Program-made: the position numbers and the translations under genes
NCBI GenBank assembly: GCA_964035545.1
Contig: OZ037766.1
Coordinates: forward strand, 9,166,722 to 9,230,721
DNA: 64,000 nucleotides
Reading direction: 5' to 3'
DNA from: Bugula neritina
Lineage: Eukaryota > Animalia > Bryozoa
The notes under the pieces: model-generated
Seen by the model: only the letters and a program-made list of their open reading frames with translations
Told to the model about the DNA's origin: nothing
The model's database searches: none
Part shown: one piece after another, positions 3,501-49,485 of the stretch
How positions within the stretch are numbered: position 1 is the first letter of the stretch
How the letters are laid out: every line of letters starts with the position of its first letter

Positions 3501-4069
3501 TTAGCAATGCCATGGTTTGATGGTAAGACTCGAACCGTAAAACTCAACGCAAGTGTGTTTGACTATTTCTACTTCATCTACACTATGATTTTACTGGTAG
3601 CTGCATGCGTATGCCTAGTTCAAGTTCTGGGAAACATTGTTTCAATTTTATACTTATAGTGAGCTAATGGTTTTAGTAATAGCCTACTAGTAATAAATCT
3701 CCAGAATTCGAGTAAAACTAAATTACTTACGGCATGAGTATGAGCACAATGATTGTATATTATTATTGTATGTGTATATTGACATTCATGATAGCAAAAA
3801 ATCAAAGTGCTGATGCAACTACAAACCAATGATTAAATTAGTATTACCCATTTTAAATTGAAAACTCCAGCTAACAGGTGGCCCCATACTTTTATAATTA
3901 TCTTGATAGTATATGCAGGTGGCAGAAGCTGAGGGAGTGTGTGCCTATTTTGGGTTATACAAACTCAAAGGGTTTAGGAATTGGTTGCAGCGTACGCAAA
4001 ATCCCGTTTTTCAACAAAATTAAGACTTCTGGTTACTTGAACATAGATTTTTCTATTGAATAAGAGTTA

Positions 4070-22800: not shown

Positions 22801-25800
22801 GGAATCACCAAAGTTTTCTTCAAAGCCGGAGTTCTTGGAGGTCTTGAAGATCTGAGAGACGAAGCTTTGACCAAGATTATTTCTAGATTCCAGGCCTTCA
22901 TTAGAGGTTATTTGATGAGGAAGAACTACAAGAAACTGCAAGATCAACGAGTTGCTCTTTCCGTCATCCAGAGAAACATCAGAAAATGGCTACTTCTGAG
23001 AAATTGGCAATGGTGGAAACTGTATCTCCGTGTCAAGCCTCTACTCAACGTTGCCCGTGCTGAAGATGAGATGAAGAAGAAGGAAGAGGAATGGGCAAAG
23101 ACAAAGGAGGAGTTGGAGAAGATTACCAAGCGGTACAAGGAGCTGGAAGAGCAGAACTTTGACCTGACCAGAGCCAAGAATGACCTGACCTTGGAGTTGG
23201 CTACTTACGAAGAGGGTGCAGCCGATTCTGATGAGAAGATGGCCGGCCTCATTACTCAGAAGGCAGATCTGGAGGCTCAGCTGAAGGAAATGGAGGATCG
23301 GCTGATGGACGAAGAAGATGCCGTTTCTGATCTGGAAGGAGCCAAGAAGAAGCTGATTGGTGATTGCGAAGAACTGCGCAAAGATGTTGAAGATCTTGAG
23401 CAGGCTTTGTCCAAGGCAGAGACTGAGAAGCAGAGCAAGGATCACCAGATTTCCACTCTGCAGGGCGAGATGGCACAGCTGGACCAGCAGATTGCTAAAC
23501 TGCAGAAGGAAAAGAAGAATAGCGAGGAGAATAGCAAGAAACTCACCGAAGATTTGCAGGCAGAAGAGGACAAAGTCAACCATCTTAACAAGATCAAACA
23601 AAAACTTGAGGCCAATCTTGATGAGGTGAGTTATATGATTATTTAGAGATCATCGATTTTGATTACTTTGATCATCAAGTGTCAATCAGTTTGTGATGTA
23701 TTCAGCTAATTTTGATTAATAACTTATAAAATCGGTAAAAATAACTCATCAACTTTTTGTAGCTGGAAGATTCTCTTGAGAGAGAAAAGAAGGTGCGTGG
23801 AGATGTGGAGAAGGCAAAGAGGAAGGTTGAAGGAGATCTGAAGATGACTCAAGAAACAGTTGAAGATCTTGAGCGAGTGAAACGTGAAATGGAGGAGTTG
23901 GTTCGTAAGAAGGAAGGCGAGATCAATGGACTGAACGGGCGTCTAGAAGATGATGCTGGTCTGATTGCTAAACTGCAGAAAACTATCAAGGAACTTCAGG
24001 TATTGCAATTCATGTGTATTCTTTAGTATAATGTACTTACATTGGTGCATGATAGAAACTTCACAATAACTTATTTGATTTAAAAAATTGTTTTGCTATA
24101 CATTTGATCAAAGCAACAAAATTTTCATTATTTTATATATTATATTACTCTATACTCTATATTACTCTGCCCACTACTTTGTTTAAAAAATCAATTTTAA
24201 TCATGTAAATATTTACTCTATTTTTTGTGCACTGAATTAATCATCTATTCCGCATGTAGTGTGCTAGTGCTAGTGTGCTAGTGCTAGTGTGCTAGTGCCT
24301 ACCAAATTTATCAGTGATACTAATTACTCTTTAATTTATGGTTTAATACGATTTTGGCTGTTAGTATGTTATCACAGCTTGCTAATTACGCCATATGGTG
24401 TGTTAAAAAATGTTAACTTTTACACTCAGTTAAAAATCAATTATTTTATCTTTTCGTATAAGAGTATCCCTAACTATATCATGTACTGTGAGCTGTAAAA
24501 TAATCAGTGCATTAGGCTGCAGCTCGCAATGTAGAATGGCTTCATCTGACAGACGCGGCTCACACATAGAACTTTATTCGGATATTGAATCAGAGTTTTC
24601 CGACAGTCAAAGCATGATAAATAACGGGGATAGTTCGCGCAAGTCTTCAGATTCCGCTTGGGGGTTAGATACTGGGGATGCTGGTCTTACCGATGCGTTT
24701 TATGAAGTGCCTCTTCCTCACACACCAGCACCAGAAGTCTTCATGCCAGTTTCAAGTACAAAGCTGCCTCCCGTTGGCAGATACATATCACAAGTTTATA
24801 TTAGTAACAATATTTCACACAGAAGCAAACGTCACATCCGTGATAGCCGAGAGTTGGAAACGATACCTCAAGTTAATCGCAATTTGCTTGAAGTAAATTT
24901 TACTGAAATACCACATTTTTTACTATATGTTCAGGTGCTCAAATTGGCTGACCATATAAAGTGGTCAGCTGTATTTACTTTTTGACATTTATAGAAAATC
25001 AAATGGAGTATTACGTGTTTTACAGGCTCGCATTGAAGAGCTCGAAGAGGAGCTTGAAGCAGAGCGTGCTGCTAGATCTAAGGTTGAGAAACAACGCAAT
25101 GAGTTGCAGCACGAGCTTGAGGATCTCTCAGACCGTCTGGATGAGGCTGGTGGCGCAACCGCTGCTCAGGTAACTTGCTACATTCTGTAGAATTAAGGCT
25201 ACATTGTATATTGTATAACCTGTGTAGTTGAATTGTAAGTTTTTTAAGCTACACTCTTTTATAATTTTGCAGTTGATAGTCCTTTGGTTTATTAAATTTC
25301 AAATTAAATATAAAGTTATAGTTTTATATTTTTATGGTACTTTTATCTCATGGTTCATTAATATGATATGCAGGTTGAGTTGAACAAGAAGAGAGAGTTG
25401 GAGTTGCAGAAACTAAGGCGGGATCTCGATGAGCAAGCTATGCAGAGCGAGGCTACCTCAGCATCTCTCCGCAAGAAGCAACAAGATGCCGTTAATGAGC
25501 TCTCCGATCAAATGGATCAGCTTACAAAGACTAAACAGAAGTAAGTGTTGTTGGATTATTTAGTTTAAACTAACCTCTTTTTAATAGACAAAGTCCTAAA
25601 TTTTGCACTAGCATTGTTTAGAAGTATGTACGTAGTTTTAGGTTTGAATATAATCATTATTATCAACTTTATTCATGTAAACTTTATGAAAAAATTCTTT
25701 AATTCACTTATGCAATTTTTAAAGGTCCAAGATAGTTTTTTAAATTAAGATGATTCAACAGCTTATTTGTATACTCTGATGGTCTAGTAGTGATAATGAT

Positions 25801-28800
25801 ACTTTGTACATGAATAGATATATGAATTACTAAGAGTTTTTTCTCTACACAGGGTTGAGAAAGAAAAAGCTCAACTCAAATCTGAATTGGATGACCTTGC
25901 CGGACAACTGGAGATGATGGGTCGCAGCAAGGTAAGCTTTCAAGCAGGAATGTGCTTTTGCAATCAAATCTTTTACAGCTATTTGTGTTTGCTCAAATAA
26001 CCAGTAAATTTATAAGTTGTAGACTACAGGTATATTAATTCAACATTGACACTAGGATAGCCATGAAATTAATTAACTTCTAATACTAAAATGTTGTATT
26101 TAACAGAGTAATGCTGAAAAGCTTGCCAAGTCTCTGGAAGCCCAACTGTCAGAGTTGCAATCTCGATTGGATGAACAAGGACGCCAGATAGTTGACTTGA
26201 ACAGCAGCAAGAGCCGCATGGGTCAAGAAAACCAGGATCTGTCCAGACAGCTTGAGGAGGCTGAGCACTCAGTCGGAGCTCTCACCAAACTCAAGGCTAA
26301 GCTGCAGTCTGAACTAGAAGAACTCAAGCGTAGTCTTGAGGATGAGACCCGCATGAGATCCAAACTTAGTAACGAAGTACGTAACCTGCAAGCTGATAAT
26401 GACACTCTCAGAGATCAAGTTGAGGAAGAGAGTGAAGGCAAAGCTGAAGTGCAAAGACACATGGCTAAAGTTCAGGGAGAGTTGGCATCATTGAGGGCTA
26501 AGATCAATAGTGGTGAATTCGGAAGTGGTGAAGCCAGTGAAGAAATGAAGAGGAAGATGGCAGCACGCGTTGCTGATATGGAGGCTCAACTGGAACAGGC
26601 AAATGCTAAATGCAGCAGTCTGGAGAAGGTCAAGAACCGATTAACCATTGAGATTGAAGATTTGATGGTAGAAGTGGAGCGCGCAAATTCTGCAGCCTCT
26701 GCATTGGAGAAAAGAGAGAAGCAATTTGATCGTACGTTGCAAGAATGGCAAGCAAAGTACCGTGATGCTCAAGCAGAACTTGAAGCTTCTCAGCGTGAAG
26801 CTCGAGGCTACTCCACCGAAGTATTCAGATACAGGTCGCAGATTGATGAGATTAATGATGTTGTTGAGTCTCTTCGAAGAGAAAACAAGAACTTGAATGA
26901 GGAAATTCATGACATCACTGATCAGTTGAGTGAAGGAGGACGCAATACTCATGAACTAGACAAGGCCAGGCGAAGATTGGAGAAAGAAAAGGAAGAGCTT
27001 CAATCTGCCTTGGAAGAAGCTGAGGCAGCGCTTGAACAAGAAGAGGCCAAGGTCATGAGGTTCCAACTTGAGCTCAGTTCTGTTAGATCTGAAATTGAGA
27101 AAAGAATCTCAGAAAAGGAAGAAGAATTTGATAACACCAGACGTAATCATGCCCGTACTCTGGAGTCAATGCAAGTTACTCTAGATGCTGAATCTAAGGG
27201 AAGGTCTGAAACACTCAGGCTGAAGAAGAAACTGGAACAAGACATCAATGAACTTGAAGTTGCTCTTGATGTGGCCAACAGAGGACGGGCAGATGCAGAG
27301 AAATCTGCCAAGAAATATCAAATCGATCTTCGAGATATCCAATCTTCATTGGAGGAAGAAGTTAGACAGAGAGATGACTTGCGTGAGCAACATGCTCTTT
27401 CAGAGCGAAGATGCACCATGCTCAACGGAGAGATTGAAGAGATGAGAACCTTGCTGGAGCAGGCTGAAAGAGGCCGCAAATCTGCAGAAGGTGAGCTTCT
27501 TGAAGCCGCTGACCGTGTGAATGAGCTGTCGGCATCTAATGCTCATGCCAACGCTCAGAAGAGGAAACTTGAGGGTGATCTGTCTTCTCTCAACTCCGAC
27601 CTGGAAGAGGCTAGCAATGAGCTGAGAGCGGCTGAGGATAGAGCCAAGAAAGCTGCTCAAGATGCAGCTCGTCTTGCTGAGGAACTTAGAGCTGAGCAAG
27701 ACCACAGCATGCACTTGGAAAAAATGCGCAAACAGTTGGATATGCAACAGAAAGAATTGCAAACCCGTCTGGATGATGCTGAAGCTAATGCTTTGAGAGG
27801 CGGTAAACGTGCTCTAGCTAAGTTGGAGGAGAGAGTCAGATATTTGGAAGCCGAACTCGATGGTGAACAGCGACGACACCAAGAAGAAATCAAAGTATCT
27901 AGAAAAACCGAGAGACGTCTCAAGGAGTTGCAAATGGCTGCTGATGAGGACAAAAAGAGCCAAGAAAGACTCACTGAACTTATTGACAAGTTGCAGAAGA
28001 AGATCCAAGTTTACAAACGTCAAGTTGAAGAAGCTGTAAGTTGGACAATACTTCTGTCTATACTTATATACTACTTGCAGTTGTGCATTTACTGAATGAT
28101 TAAGTGTGCTACTGCTTTATAACTGTTGATATCTGTAGTGGGATAATTTAGATTGCGTTGCATTGCTTCTAAACAATCAGAAATAGTTTAATTTCACCAC
28201 ATATTAGCTTAGCTATGAATTAAATTTGCTCTAACTTGATGATCGACTCTCTTGTGAAATTATAGGAGGAGATTGCTGCTGTCAACCTTGCTAAGTACCG
28301 CAAGGTACAGCACGAGCTTGAAGAAGCAGAGAACCGAGCTGATGAGGCAGAAAACAGTGTTGCCAAACTTCGCAGCAAAAGCCGCAGCAGCATGAGCCAA
28401 TCACGAACAGTTTCTGGTGGTGGTCCAGGAGTAAGTGTTTTAGTTAAAAACATTATATTCACTATGCCATAATCATAAATATCAAGTTTTGAGTAATAGA
28501 AAACCTTCCTTATGATAGCAAATGCCTTACGCTAAACATTGTGTTGTTAGAGCTCTGTGGTGATTAAAACAACCCGAAAAGTTGTCAGCAGCTCTACTAC
28601 TGAGCAATAAATGAAGTGTAAGTTTTCTTGTCAACTGTTGGTCTTACTGCTTTAGAAATGTGTCCTTGTGCCTAGCATGTAAATGTAGCTTTGCAAGCTG
28701 TCAATCTCTTGCAATTCATGTTTTATTTCTACTGGCTAGCCAGCACTTCATACATTTGTTCATTATTTACAGTTCTAAATCATACTTGGGTATGTTGGTA

Positions 28801-29183
28801 TTGAGTGTTAGTAGGTATTGCTGCATGTTATCATTCCCTTCCCAGAAGTACTTATAGTCTGCATCACTAAATATTATTATATTATTCCACATATTACTTT
28901 TTTTTTAAAATATGAAACTTTGACTCGCTTTCTTTTTTAAATATTAACTCACACCATAAGCTTACTTTGTTATGTGTGGCTAAGCATGCAAATAACCAAC
29001 AATGACATTTCAGATTAAATAGAATAATATAGTATATACAATTATCAAACTCTTTTGCATTTTGTAACTGTTACATATAAATTGTTATTTCAGTATGCTA
29101 GTGGTTACTCCAGCTCCAAGTATAGCCAAAATTCACGAACTGCTTCACAAGCTGAGTATGATGGAGAAAGTCAACAGGAATAA
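16828..29183 (+). CDS. Mhc: Striated-muscle myosin II heavy chain (about 1949 or 1959 aa depending on tail exon)
   Basis: Exons 16828-17025, 17442-17585, 19006-19190, 19608-19800, 20841-21257, 21383-21640, 21810-21980, 22123-23625, 23763-23999, 25026-25169, 25374-25540, 25853-25931, 26107-28035 and 28266-28430, then 28551-28610 or 29094-29183; all phases consistent. [43 protein letters not shown] and the coiled-coil rod are present. Confidence 0.97.
24536..24892 (+). CDS. Alternative first exon of a headless catchin/myorod-like myosin isoform (119 aa unique N-terminus)
   Basis: ATG at 24536, open for 119 codons ([16 protein letters not shown]...PQVNRNLLE). Phase-0 donor GTAAAT at 24893 matches the phase-0 acceptor at 25026 ([14 protein letters not shown]). 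About 16 CpG against almost none in the distal flanking intron sequence. Confidence 0.72.
28551..28610 (+). CDS. Myosin alternative terminal exon A ([19 protein letters not shown])
   Basis: Acceptor gttag, phase 0 after GGGPG, AATAAA overlapping the stop. Confidence 0.7.
   Translation, partial: SSVVIKTTRKVVSSSTTEQ
29094..29183 (+). CDS. Myosin alternative terminal exon B ([29 protein letters not shown])
   Basis: Acceptor ttatttcag, phase 0, Ser-rich/acidic tailpiece. AATAAA overlaps the stop and recurs near 29309. Confidence 0.75.
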   Translation, partial: YASGYSSSKYSQNSRTASQAEYDGESQQE

Positions 29184-47366: not shown

Positions 47367-49485
47367 GTTGTCTAGCATCACCAGCTTGCTGCTCTCAAAG
47401 CTGTGTATATATAATATCAGGATGAATCTGTTTATTATCATAGGTAATAAATCTAGGCTCTATAATTTGTCAAAAAAGCCGATTAAATTGTATTTCTCAA
47501 ATGAATTTCATTTTTTCAGGTCTGCTGGTTTCCAAAGCTGTATATAAGATTATTTATCTATTATATATTTAACTTCCATCTTATGAAACTGGTTTTAAGC
47601 AACGTCTCTCTCTATATGCTGTTATAGTTTGCCTCGTCTATGTATGGGATCGCAACCCCAACATATCTTTTAGACTAGCATATGAAAATTTAATAGGTCA
47701 TTATTTCATTTATATTGTTTTTTTTCATTTATTTGTGTTATTATTCATAGGTTGTGTGATGAAAATCTAAAGTATGTTTTTATTACACTGATGTAAAATT
47801 GTATTTTACTTGCCATCCTTATGTGTAACTTCTGCTGTTTGTGTTGTTTTTTCTGGCCTGGATAGTGCATGCAAGGCCATGTGATATATGAACACTTATA
47901 TACTAAGATCTAATGATAAGGTATATTTTTATTTAATATATTGTTGTGATAATGCTAAAGTTATTTAATTTGTTTATGTTACTATTGCTGCAATAGTTGC
48001 CTCTAACACGCATTTGTATGACAATCAGTTCATTGCTTCACTGGAGATCTAATTTAAGCAATGTGTAATGCAATAAAATGTTTGAAAAACCAACACAAGT
48101 TACTTACTTCTTTTCAAGTTATATTTATCTGCCATTTATGACACCTTTTGGGCAGTTTGTGACACTTTTAGGCAGTGGTTGCTACTTAAGGAAACTTGGT
48201 GAGTTTTAGCTGTTGGTGCATTTTATGGATGTTATGCAACGGTGATGTTGCTAATTTTGGTTTAAAGCAAGGCTTATAGATTATTGATATACACAGTGTG
48301 CATAGGAAGCTGCATTGTATGTAGTATGATACTGTATTGTCAAACTAAAAAATACAATTAGCATAATACAGAAACACAAATCACATCATGTTATCAGATT
48401 AAATAAAAGTAAATTTAAAGGAATTATAATCATCACACTTATAGTAATTCATTGCATTGCCATTTCTGCCAACTATCTTAGCAGATAAATTGAATGCCTA
48501 TAAACAAGCCTGCAATGACAGAGCAAACTAAAATAACATGCTAAACTGTGTTATACGTTCCAGAAAACCTGGTAATATTGTAGCTAACCAGTAGGAAAAA
48601 GTTTGAAAATAATGGGCTGTTCTATAAATTCTTTGTATTTTGAGCTAAATCTCATTTACTCTATGGAAAGTTAAAATGGTAATGAATTTAATTATTTTTA
48701 TTTTATCAAATGCCATACTTTCTTTAGACTTCAGTTGTTGCTTTGGACTTTAGATCGCCATTTGCCATGATTATTACTACATGACTGTAACGTTATGCTT
48801 ATGAAGTTTACCAAGTAAATTTAACTGACTACGCTGAACTGATCTGGGTATGAAAATAGTAGTTAGCAGTCTTTAAATATTGGGTAGCCAATAGCCCTAT
48901 TGGGTAGGGGTATGGATTTAAATCAGAAACATGAGTACACAAATCCAAATTATAACCAAGTGTAACTTTTAAACACACTAAAACTTGACAGAATATTAAA
49001 ATCTTGTACATCAGTAAAGTCTGCAGCCAACAAAATAATTGTAATAATATTTGCCCATATACATACAAACGAAACGCAATTGAAATTCTCTAAGATTATC
49101 AAGTTTGGTATTTGGAACAAGGAATTGTCTTCACAGGATTGTTGACCCTGTAAACACTGTTCTTCCCTGCAAACTAATGTATAAGTATGTTTCATACACA
49201 GATTAATTTCTGGTGAGTGTTGATAACTGTTTCTATTGCATTTAGTCTAGTGAGAAGTGCAGTCCTCAACATTCTCTATCTGCTCCAGTTTATAGTGCAT
49301 ACATATCTGCTGATACTAGGTGAAAGATAGGGTAACTCCTTAACCTTTCCTAAATGATTGCTGCTCTCTCACTGCAACTTTATATACTCATTACGACTGA
49401 AAACAAATTTCCCATGTCTTTTACCAGTTGTTACAATTACGAACTATTACAGCCTAAGAAAAGACTCAGTAACAAACCAGATTGA

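Follow-up and report, generated by a model that had tools for sequence, protein, structure and literature searches.

A muscle myosin heavy chain (Mhc) gene of Bugula neritina, which is a cheilostome bryozoan and not a mollusc (assembly tzBugNeri2.1; PMC11480708), carries in one of its rod introns an exon that is very probably the bryozoan homologue of the first exon of molluscan catchin (myorod), transcribed from an internal promoter and encoding a headless rod product. The assignment is supported by sequence homology with catchin at the junction with the rod, beyond the shared architecture alone. Positions are those of the window, by which we mean the whole 64,000-nucleotide stretch of DNA that was analysed; the features of the locus are collected in Table 1.

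Structure of the locus

The coding part of the exon opens with an ATG (24536 through 24538) and closes with a phase 0 donor (GAA/gtaaat after 24892); the acceptor of the rod exon that follows reads ttacag/GCT (25025/25026). A sequence-only reading of the window had described an ATG-led, CpG-rich, non-helical frame of 119 codons between 24000 and 25025, ending in a phase 0 donor, and had put the product at about 966 to 976 residues with 828 from the rod. The analysis bears this out. The coordinates and codon count agree, and the observed/expected CpG ratio is 0.93 in the exon versus 0.34 to 0.36 in the flanking intron and 0.38 in the window as a whole. AlphaFold2 assigned the 119-residue arm a mean pLDDT of 56, with a single helix of four residues. 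By exon arithmetic, the rod shared by five exons amounts to 828 codons, which with a tailpiece of 19 or 29 residues gives 966 or 976 aa. The same reading had noted that none of the nearby AG acceptors upstream of the ATG (24507 through 24535) is in phase 0, and indeed the interval from the upstream in-frame stop to codon 20 contains none in that phase. A Pfam scan with the exon alignment matched no family, and a search of the ESM Atlas gave no usable match.

RNA joints back the shared rod exons up to position 26300. Within the host intron, a TGCTAG-type repeat at 24265 through 24300 varies between B. neritina types. Elsewhere in the window, genes recognised by eye encode a TDP2-like phosphodiesterase (7599 through 8387, + strand), a METTL9-like methyltransferase (9739 through 10651, - strand), a ZnT/SLC30 zinc transporter with a His-rich loop (38400 through 47363, + strand) and an SLC17-like transporter (53673 through 59774, + strand); there is also a short tandem repeat array at 4060 through 4230 and a long (CA)n microsatellite at 49440 through 49850.

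Table 1. Features of the Mhc locus in the window and of the corresponding exon in the second Mhc gene
Feature	Position	Strand	Remarks
Host intron of the muscle Mhc gene	24000-25025	+	1026 nt, GT..AG; removed by splicing in RNA contigs from three runs
Conserved non-coding motif GCCATATGG with E-box, candidate promoter element	24390-24398	+	
Conserved non-coding motif AAATCAAT with adjoining TTATCT (GATA-like); candidate promoter element	24434-24451	+	
Probable 5' leader of the internal transcript	24451-24535	+	RNA contigs begin at ~24451 (X3) and 24476 (X1)
Probable catchin-type alternative first exon, coding part	24536-24892	+	119 codons, 357 nt; mostly disordered
Junction motif homologous to mollusc catchin, last 27 codons	24812-24892	+	Ungapped, junction-anchored comparison
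Ser104, aligned with myorod Thr141	24845-24847	+	Lies 16 residues ahead of the junction; aligned by position
Predicted intron of the headless transcript	24893-25025	+	GTAAAT...TTACAG
First shared rod exon (ARIEEL...), catchin/rod joining point	25026-25169	+	
Shared rod exon	25374-25540	+	RNA joints
Shared rod exon	25853-25931	+	RNA joints
Large shared rod exon	26107-28035	+	5' joint in RNA; frame and donor
Last rod exon	28266-28430	+	Prediction; beyond the stretch compared with reads
Candidate last exon A, 19-aa tailpiece	28551-28610	+	Predicted; AATAAA at 28606; L019 conserves it and L034 has a similar exon
Candidate last exon B, 29-aa tailpiece	29094-29183	+	Predicted; AATAAA at 29179; conserved in L019, whose copy differs by one change
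Catchin-type exon in the same intron of the second Mhc gene	L012:7144-7569 = C1:10727143-10727568		142 codons

Conservation and coding constraint

The exon is single-copy in the B. neritina genome and, by its substitution pattern, is under strong purifying selection. Between the window and a second B. neritina type (L019) the exon shows 16 synonymous substitutions, a single non-synonymous one and no indels (dN/dS = 0.015), and dN/dS between species is 0.07 to 0.18 where unsaturated. Introns are 6 to 18% different between the B. neritina types, with indels in each; the intron immediately downstream of the exon (24893 through 25025) shows 14% substitutions and three indels. Over 23600 through 26300, public B. 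neritina runs and L019 differ from the assembly by ~2.5% in exons and 6 to 18% in introns, a level of sequence divergence that fits a different cryptic type of B. neritina.

A search with the 119-residue query returned eight diverged homologues (44 to 62% identity, E = 1e-35 to 2e-8), to which a profile search added three more. In all, nine other lineages were found to carry the exon in this myosin intron, and a second muscle Mhc gene has one too. At every locus that could be fetched it adjoins the ARIEEL exon of a myosin gene on the 5' side, and the matching upstream myosin exon precedes it wherever the locus contig reaches that far. The rods of the orthologous loci are 84 to 91% identical to the window rod and form one clade with it in the tree, from which we infer that the source animals are other bryozoans. 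The sequence-only reading had proposed examining the orthologous intron of relatives for frames with dN/dS below 1, and the conserved exon found there, with the between-species values given above, agrees with that proposal.

All 13 loci start with ATG and end in GAA/GTA, and conservation begins at the Met and stops exactly at the donor. Arm length ranges from 95 to 142 aa across loci. The downstream intron spans 66 to 380 nt in the 13 loci, and read-through to the first stop would add 2 to 31 residues that are not conserved. An in-frame stop lies 0 to 3 codons 5' of the ATG in four loci, and this, with no conserved in-frame acceptor, speaks against a cassette exon.

The second muscle Mhc gene lies at C1:10.72-10.73 Mb and its rod is 69% identical to the window rod. 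A genome-wide search with the exon profile gave two matches only, the window exon and the one in this paralogue, whose junction motif begins ISARSK, as in scallop catchin. Neither AAATCAAT nor GCCATATGG accompanies the paralogous exon; a MEF2-like site lies 88 nt upstream of it. Since a run from another species holds both exon types (L032 and L033), the exon appears to be older than the duplication.

Homology with mollusc catchin

Mollusc catchin exons join the rod at LLE/ARIEEL (PMC3912159, Fig. S3). The nearest known counterparts are the catchin (myorod) of the bivalves Mytilus, Argopecten and Crassostrea and the catchin exon of the gastropods Aplysia, Biomphalaria and Lottia (Mhc6) (PMC3912159, PMC12040844). 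Identities over the last 27 residues of the window exon were counted by reading, against mollusc sequences that are machine-read figure text with visible errors: there are 11 each for Mytilus and Argopecten, 10 for Crassostrea and 9 for Aplysia, without gaps; 11 identities in 27 correspond to a binomial p of 1e-6 to 3e-5, and the 9 to 11 found with five mollusc sequences to a p of 9e-4 or lower. The identities span the whole 27-mer, including the final NLLE. The unique segment had seemed, by eye, not recognisably similar to catchin in the sequence-only reading; that judgement is reversed for these 27 residues, which match mollusc catchins ungapped (11 of 27 in Mytilus). Its suggestion of a catchin-like architecture in an animal other than a mollusc stands, the host being a bryozoan with a conserved, ATG-led and donor-terminated exon in the catchin intron.

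The core of the motif is SARSKKILRDT in Mytilus catchin (PMC3912159). The unique part of myorod comprises 156 residues, and its phosphorylated Thr141 lies 16 residues ahead of the junction (PMC12040844, PMC4410989). The bryozoan residue at this position, Ser104, is invariant in 13 bryozoan-type sequences; Argopecten has Ala at the Thr141-equivalent position. Beyond the ~27 junction residues, the rest of the 119-residue arm does not align with molluscs, and a block found upstream in molluscs (RDYRG.SP ... HP) is absent from the bryozoan exons. The bryozoan exon profile matched no mollusc protein in a 50% library, and the rod search returned neither a named catchin nor a full-length bryozoan isoform.

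The bryozoan exon thus resembles that of catchin/myorod in being a unique first exon inside a muscle Mhc gene, in the intron before the ARIEEL exon, and in encoding a non-helical arm with the same basic residues in the 27-residue junction motif and a Ser in place of Thr141. The predicted product would likewise lack the motor domain and contain 828 rod residues, against ~830 in catchin. It differs in the length and composition of the arm (119 aa and acidic, versus ~156 aa and Thr/Pro-rich in catchin), in the presence of the exon in two Mhc paralogues and in an RNA share of at most a few percent.

RNA coverage and promoter candidates

Contigs from three runs of three studies, classed as RNA by guess alone, cover the exon (24476 through 25052, ~24451 through 24663 and 24559 through 24849). 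In those three runs no RNA contig covers 24055 through 24418 or the other introns; a DNA-like run, by contrast, covers the whole region including introns. Depth over the exon relative to the myosin exons is 14 vs. 4820, 2.6 vs. 92 and 5 vs. 344, equivalent to 0.3 to 3% in these whole-animal contigs. The joint between 24892 and 25026 is absent from the RNA contigs of the three runs, such contigs dropping rare variants, and the sole contig that crosses this interval (X1, depth 14) retains the intron. The same contigs contain no joint from 23999 into the exon.

Two conserved motifs precede the exon. The copy of GCCATATGG in the host intron is the only one on the + strand of the window; five of ten orthologous loci have the motif 125 to 211 nt 5' of the ATG, and seven have its CATATG core. 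All ten loci have AAATCAAT 64 to 133 nt 5' of the ATG (background, 0.125 per kb), and in seven it forms a composite with TTATCT, which occurs once in the window. Both motifs may be promoter elements, and, taken with the ends of the RNA contigs, their conservation points to an internal promoter in the rod intron. A TATA-like TATAAGAG at 24457 is not taken as the core promoter, since an RNA contig reaches upstream of it and it is not conserved.

Related headless proteins

Five full-length headless proteins of 990 to 1025 aa were found (P0030, P0032 [L035, SRR10938839], P0041, P0155 and P0156). They form a clade of their own (100/100), with rods only 42 to 52% identical to the window rod, and are apparently the products of stand-alone headless genes; they were left out of the phylum count. 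For one of them the contig contains an intron-free ORF with in-frame stops 5' of the ATG. In these proteins, as in Lottia Mhc8, the rod begins at the same junction as here. A related motif is present in four of the five, which are above chance in the junction register (p ~0.001), although Ser/Thr at -16 is found in P0156 only; Lottia Mhc8 differs in lacking the long arm. By eye, these four also match mollusc catchin further upstream, and the RDYRG.SP ... HP block is partly present in P0030-type proteins. The unique region of P0030, used as a query, returned its own group only and no named mollusc protein. Two members of the clade are labelled chromosome segregation ATPase by their source, and the tailpiece of candidate last exon A resembles the tails of the P0030 group.

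Paramyosin, which forms the filament core, is similar in that its first coding exons in B. neritina end E/gt and join AR.RELE at the same rod position. Unlike the exon described here, these belong to a separate gene and encode a headpiece of ~30 aa that does not match the exon profile. A locus on C7 was rejected as a myosin gene, its sequence reading as paramyosin. This paramyosin-like gene (L036, C7:14276646-14274077, minus strand) has two alternative first coding exons, both of which end ...YRG(T/M)SPTTSNRME/gt and join the rod at the catchin position. Mollusc catchin arms contain YRGTSP as well, ~50 residues ahead of the junction (PMC3912159), through either shared origin or coincidence.

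Drosophila Mrp is likewise a headless product with an internal start in a muscle Mhc gene, but it exceeds catchin by ~260 residues, begins with the exon that follows the light-chain region and has an N terminus that is unconserved even among insects (PMC3912159). The bryozoan exon starts at the catchin position and not at that of Drosophila-type Mrp.

Alternative explanations

The headless isoform could be real and yet independent of mollusc catchin, with the shared intron and motif arising by convergence on a convenient entry point into the coiled coil and a basic kinase site. Similarity to molluscs that is confined to ~27 residues, with no mollusc match to the exon profile, would suit such an origin, and the start of the paramyosin rod at the same junction suggests that this position may be favoured. 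We nevertheless consider convergence unlikely: the splice site fixes a register that needs no gaps, the identities extend beyond the kinase site through the whole 27-mer to NLLE, ISARSK is common to the C1 paralogue and scallop catchin, and four of five unrelated headless proteins exceed chance in the same register (p ~0.001). It is less likely still that most of the RNA from the exon stays unspliced and is translated into a short free peptide (~146 to 149 aa), or is simply degraded, with no rod protein made. The low depth and the retained intron in the only donor-crossing contig are what this would predict, but the read-through part is unconserved (2 to 31 aa, with indels between types) while the GTA donor is invariant, conservation ends exactly at that donor, and contigs drop rare variants.

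The phase 0 donors of both the upstream exon and the exon itself, together with an in-frame AG upstream in L019, L016, L017 and L029, would allow a cassette exon, through which full-length myosin would gain ~120 disordered residues within its rod. There is, however, no in-frame AG in the window, in L015, L024 or L033, or in the paralogue; L024 has a stop directly 5' of the ATG, and the AG of L019 is out of frame in the window. With the start Met invariant and no RNA joint from 23999 to the exon, we regard a cassette as highly improbable. As for a transposon remnant or a chance open frame in the intron, which the CpG richness relative to the flanks might suggest, it is refuted by a single-copy exon with dN/dS of 0.015 to 0.18 that is syntenic in all loci. 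The sequence-only reading had itself named a multi-copy transposable element as the outcome that would count against it, and the exon is nothing of the kind.

Proposed product and its role

That a headless isoform is made from this exon remains the strongly favoured reading of the sequence. Transcription would start near 24450 to 24476, from the internal promoter in the rod intron, and the exon would join the rod exon at 25026 by phase 0 splicing, as the invariant donor suggests. The product would be a motor-less myosin of 966 or 976 aa, forming a headless dimer of ~110-kDa chains, in which a disordered, acidic, Ser-rich arm is followed by the conserved basic motif with its Ser and then by the rod as in motor myosin. 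A proline 8 to 9 residues before the junction would end the coiled coil, leaving the basic motif and Ser104 just outside it as a putative switch.

Myorod forms co-filaments with myosin and has phosphorylation-dependent effects on actin binding and ATPase (PMC12040844, PMC4410989). By analogy, in a subset of muscle cells the rod dimer would co-assemble on thick filaments that have a paramyosin core, and phosphorylation of Ser104 would tune contacts with actin or myosin; for such a phospho-switch role of the Ser104 motif, drawn from the likeness to myorod, we see roughly even chances. Given the low RNA share, a minor or cell-restricted component fits better than the 1:1 ratio of bivalve catch muscle.

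Discussion

Myorod/catchin has been described as specific to molluscan catch muscle (PMC4410989, PMC12040844), although the exon is also present in gastropods (PMC3912159) and the protein occurs in the striated larval muscle of oysters (PMC13762225). A targeted literature search, with most subscription papers outside its reach, returned no catchin outside molluscs. A 2025 review makes no mention of bryozoans, annelids or brachiopods, and the literature searched holds no description of a catch state for bryozoans. On the sequence comparisons made here, the exon is a catchin-type exon in a new phylum, Bryozoa, and would encode a known kind of protein.

If this is true, the origin of catchin predates the split between molluscs and bryozoans and is separate from catch as found in bivalves. 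Within the arm, the conserved core is narrowed to ~27 residues around the Thr141 site, which makes it a precise target for asking what myorod does and whether catch needs it. More speculatively, a headless myosin switchable by phosphorylation may have been an ancestral thick-filament component of lophotrochozoans, kept in both bryozoan Mhc paralogues and converted into stand-alone genes elsewhere. On this tentative view, which we think possible but rather less than probable, the holding muscles of bryozoans would use a low-cost, catch-like tension, and paramyosin, with its entry into the rod at the same splice junction, may derive from a headless transcript of this kind.
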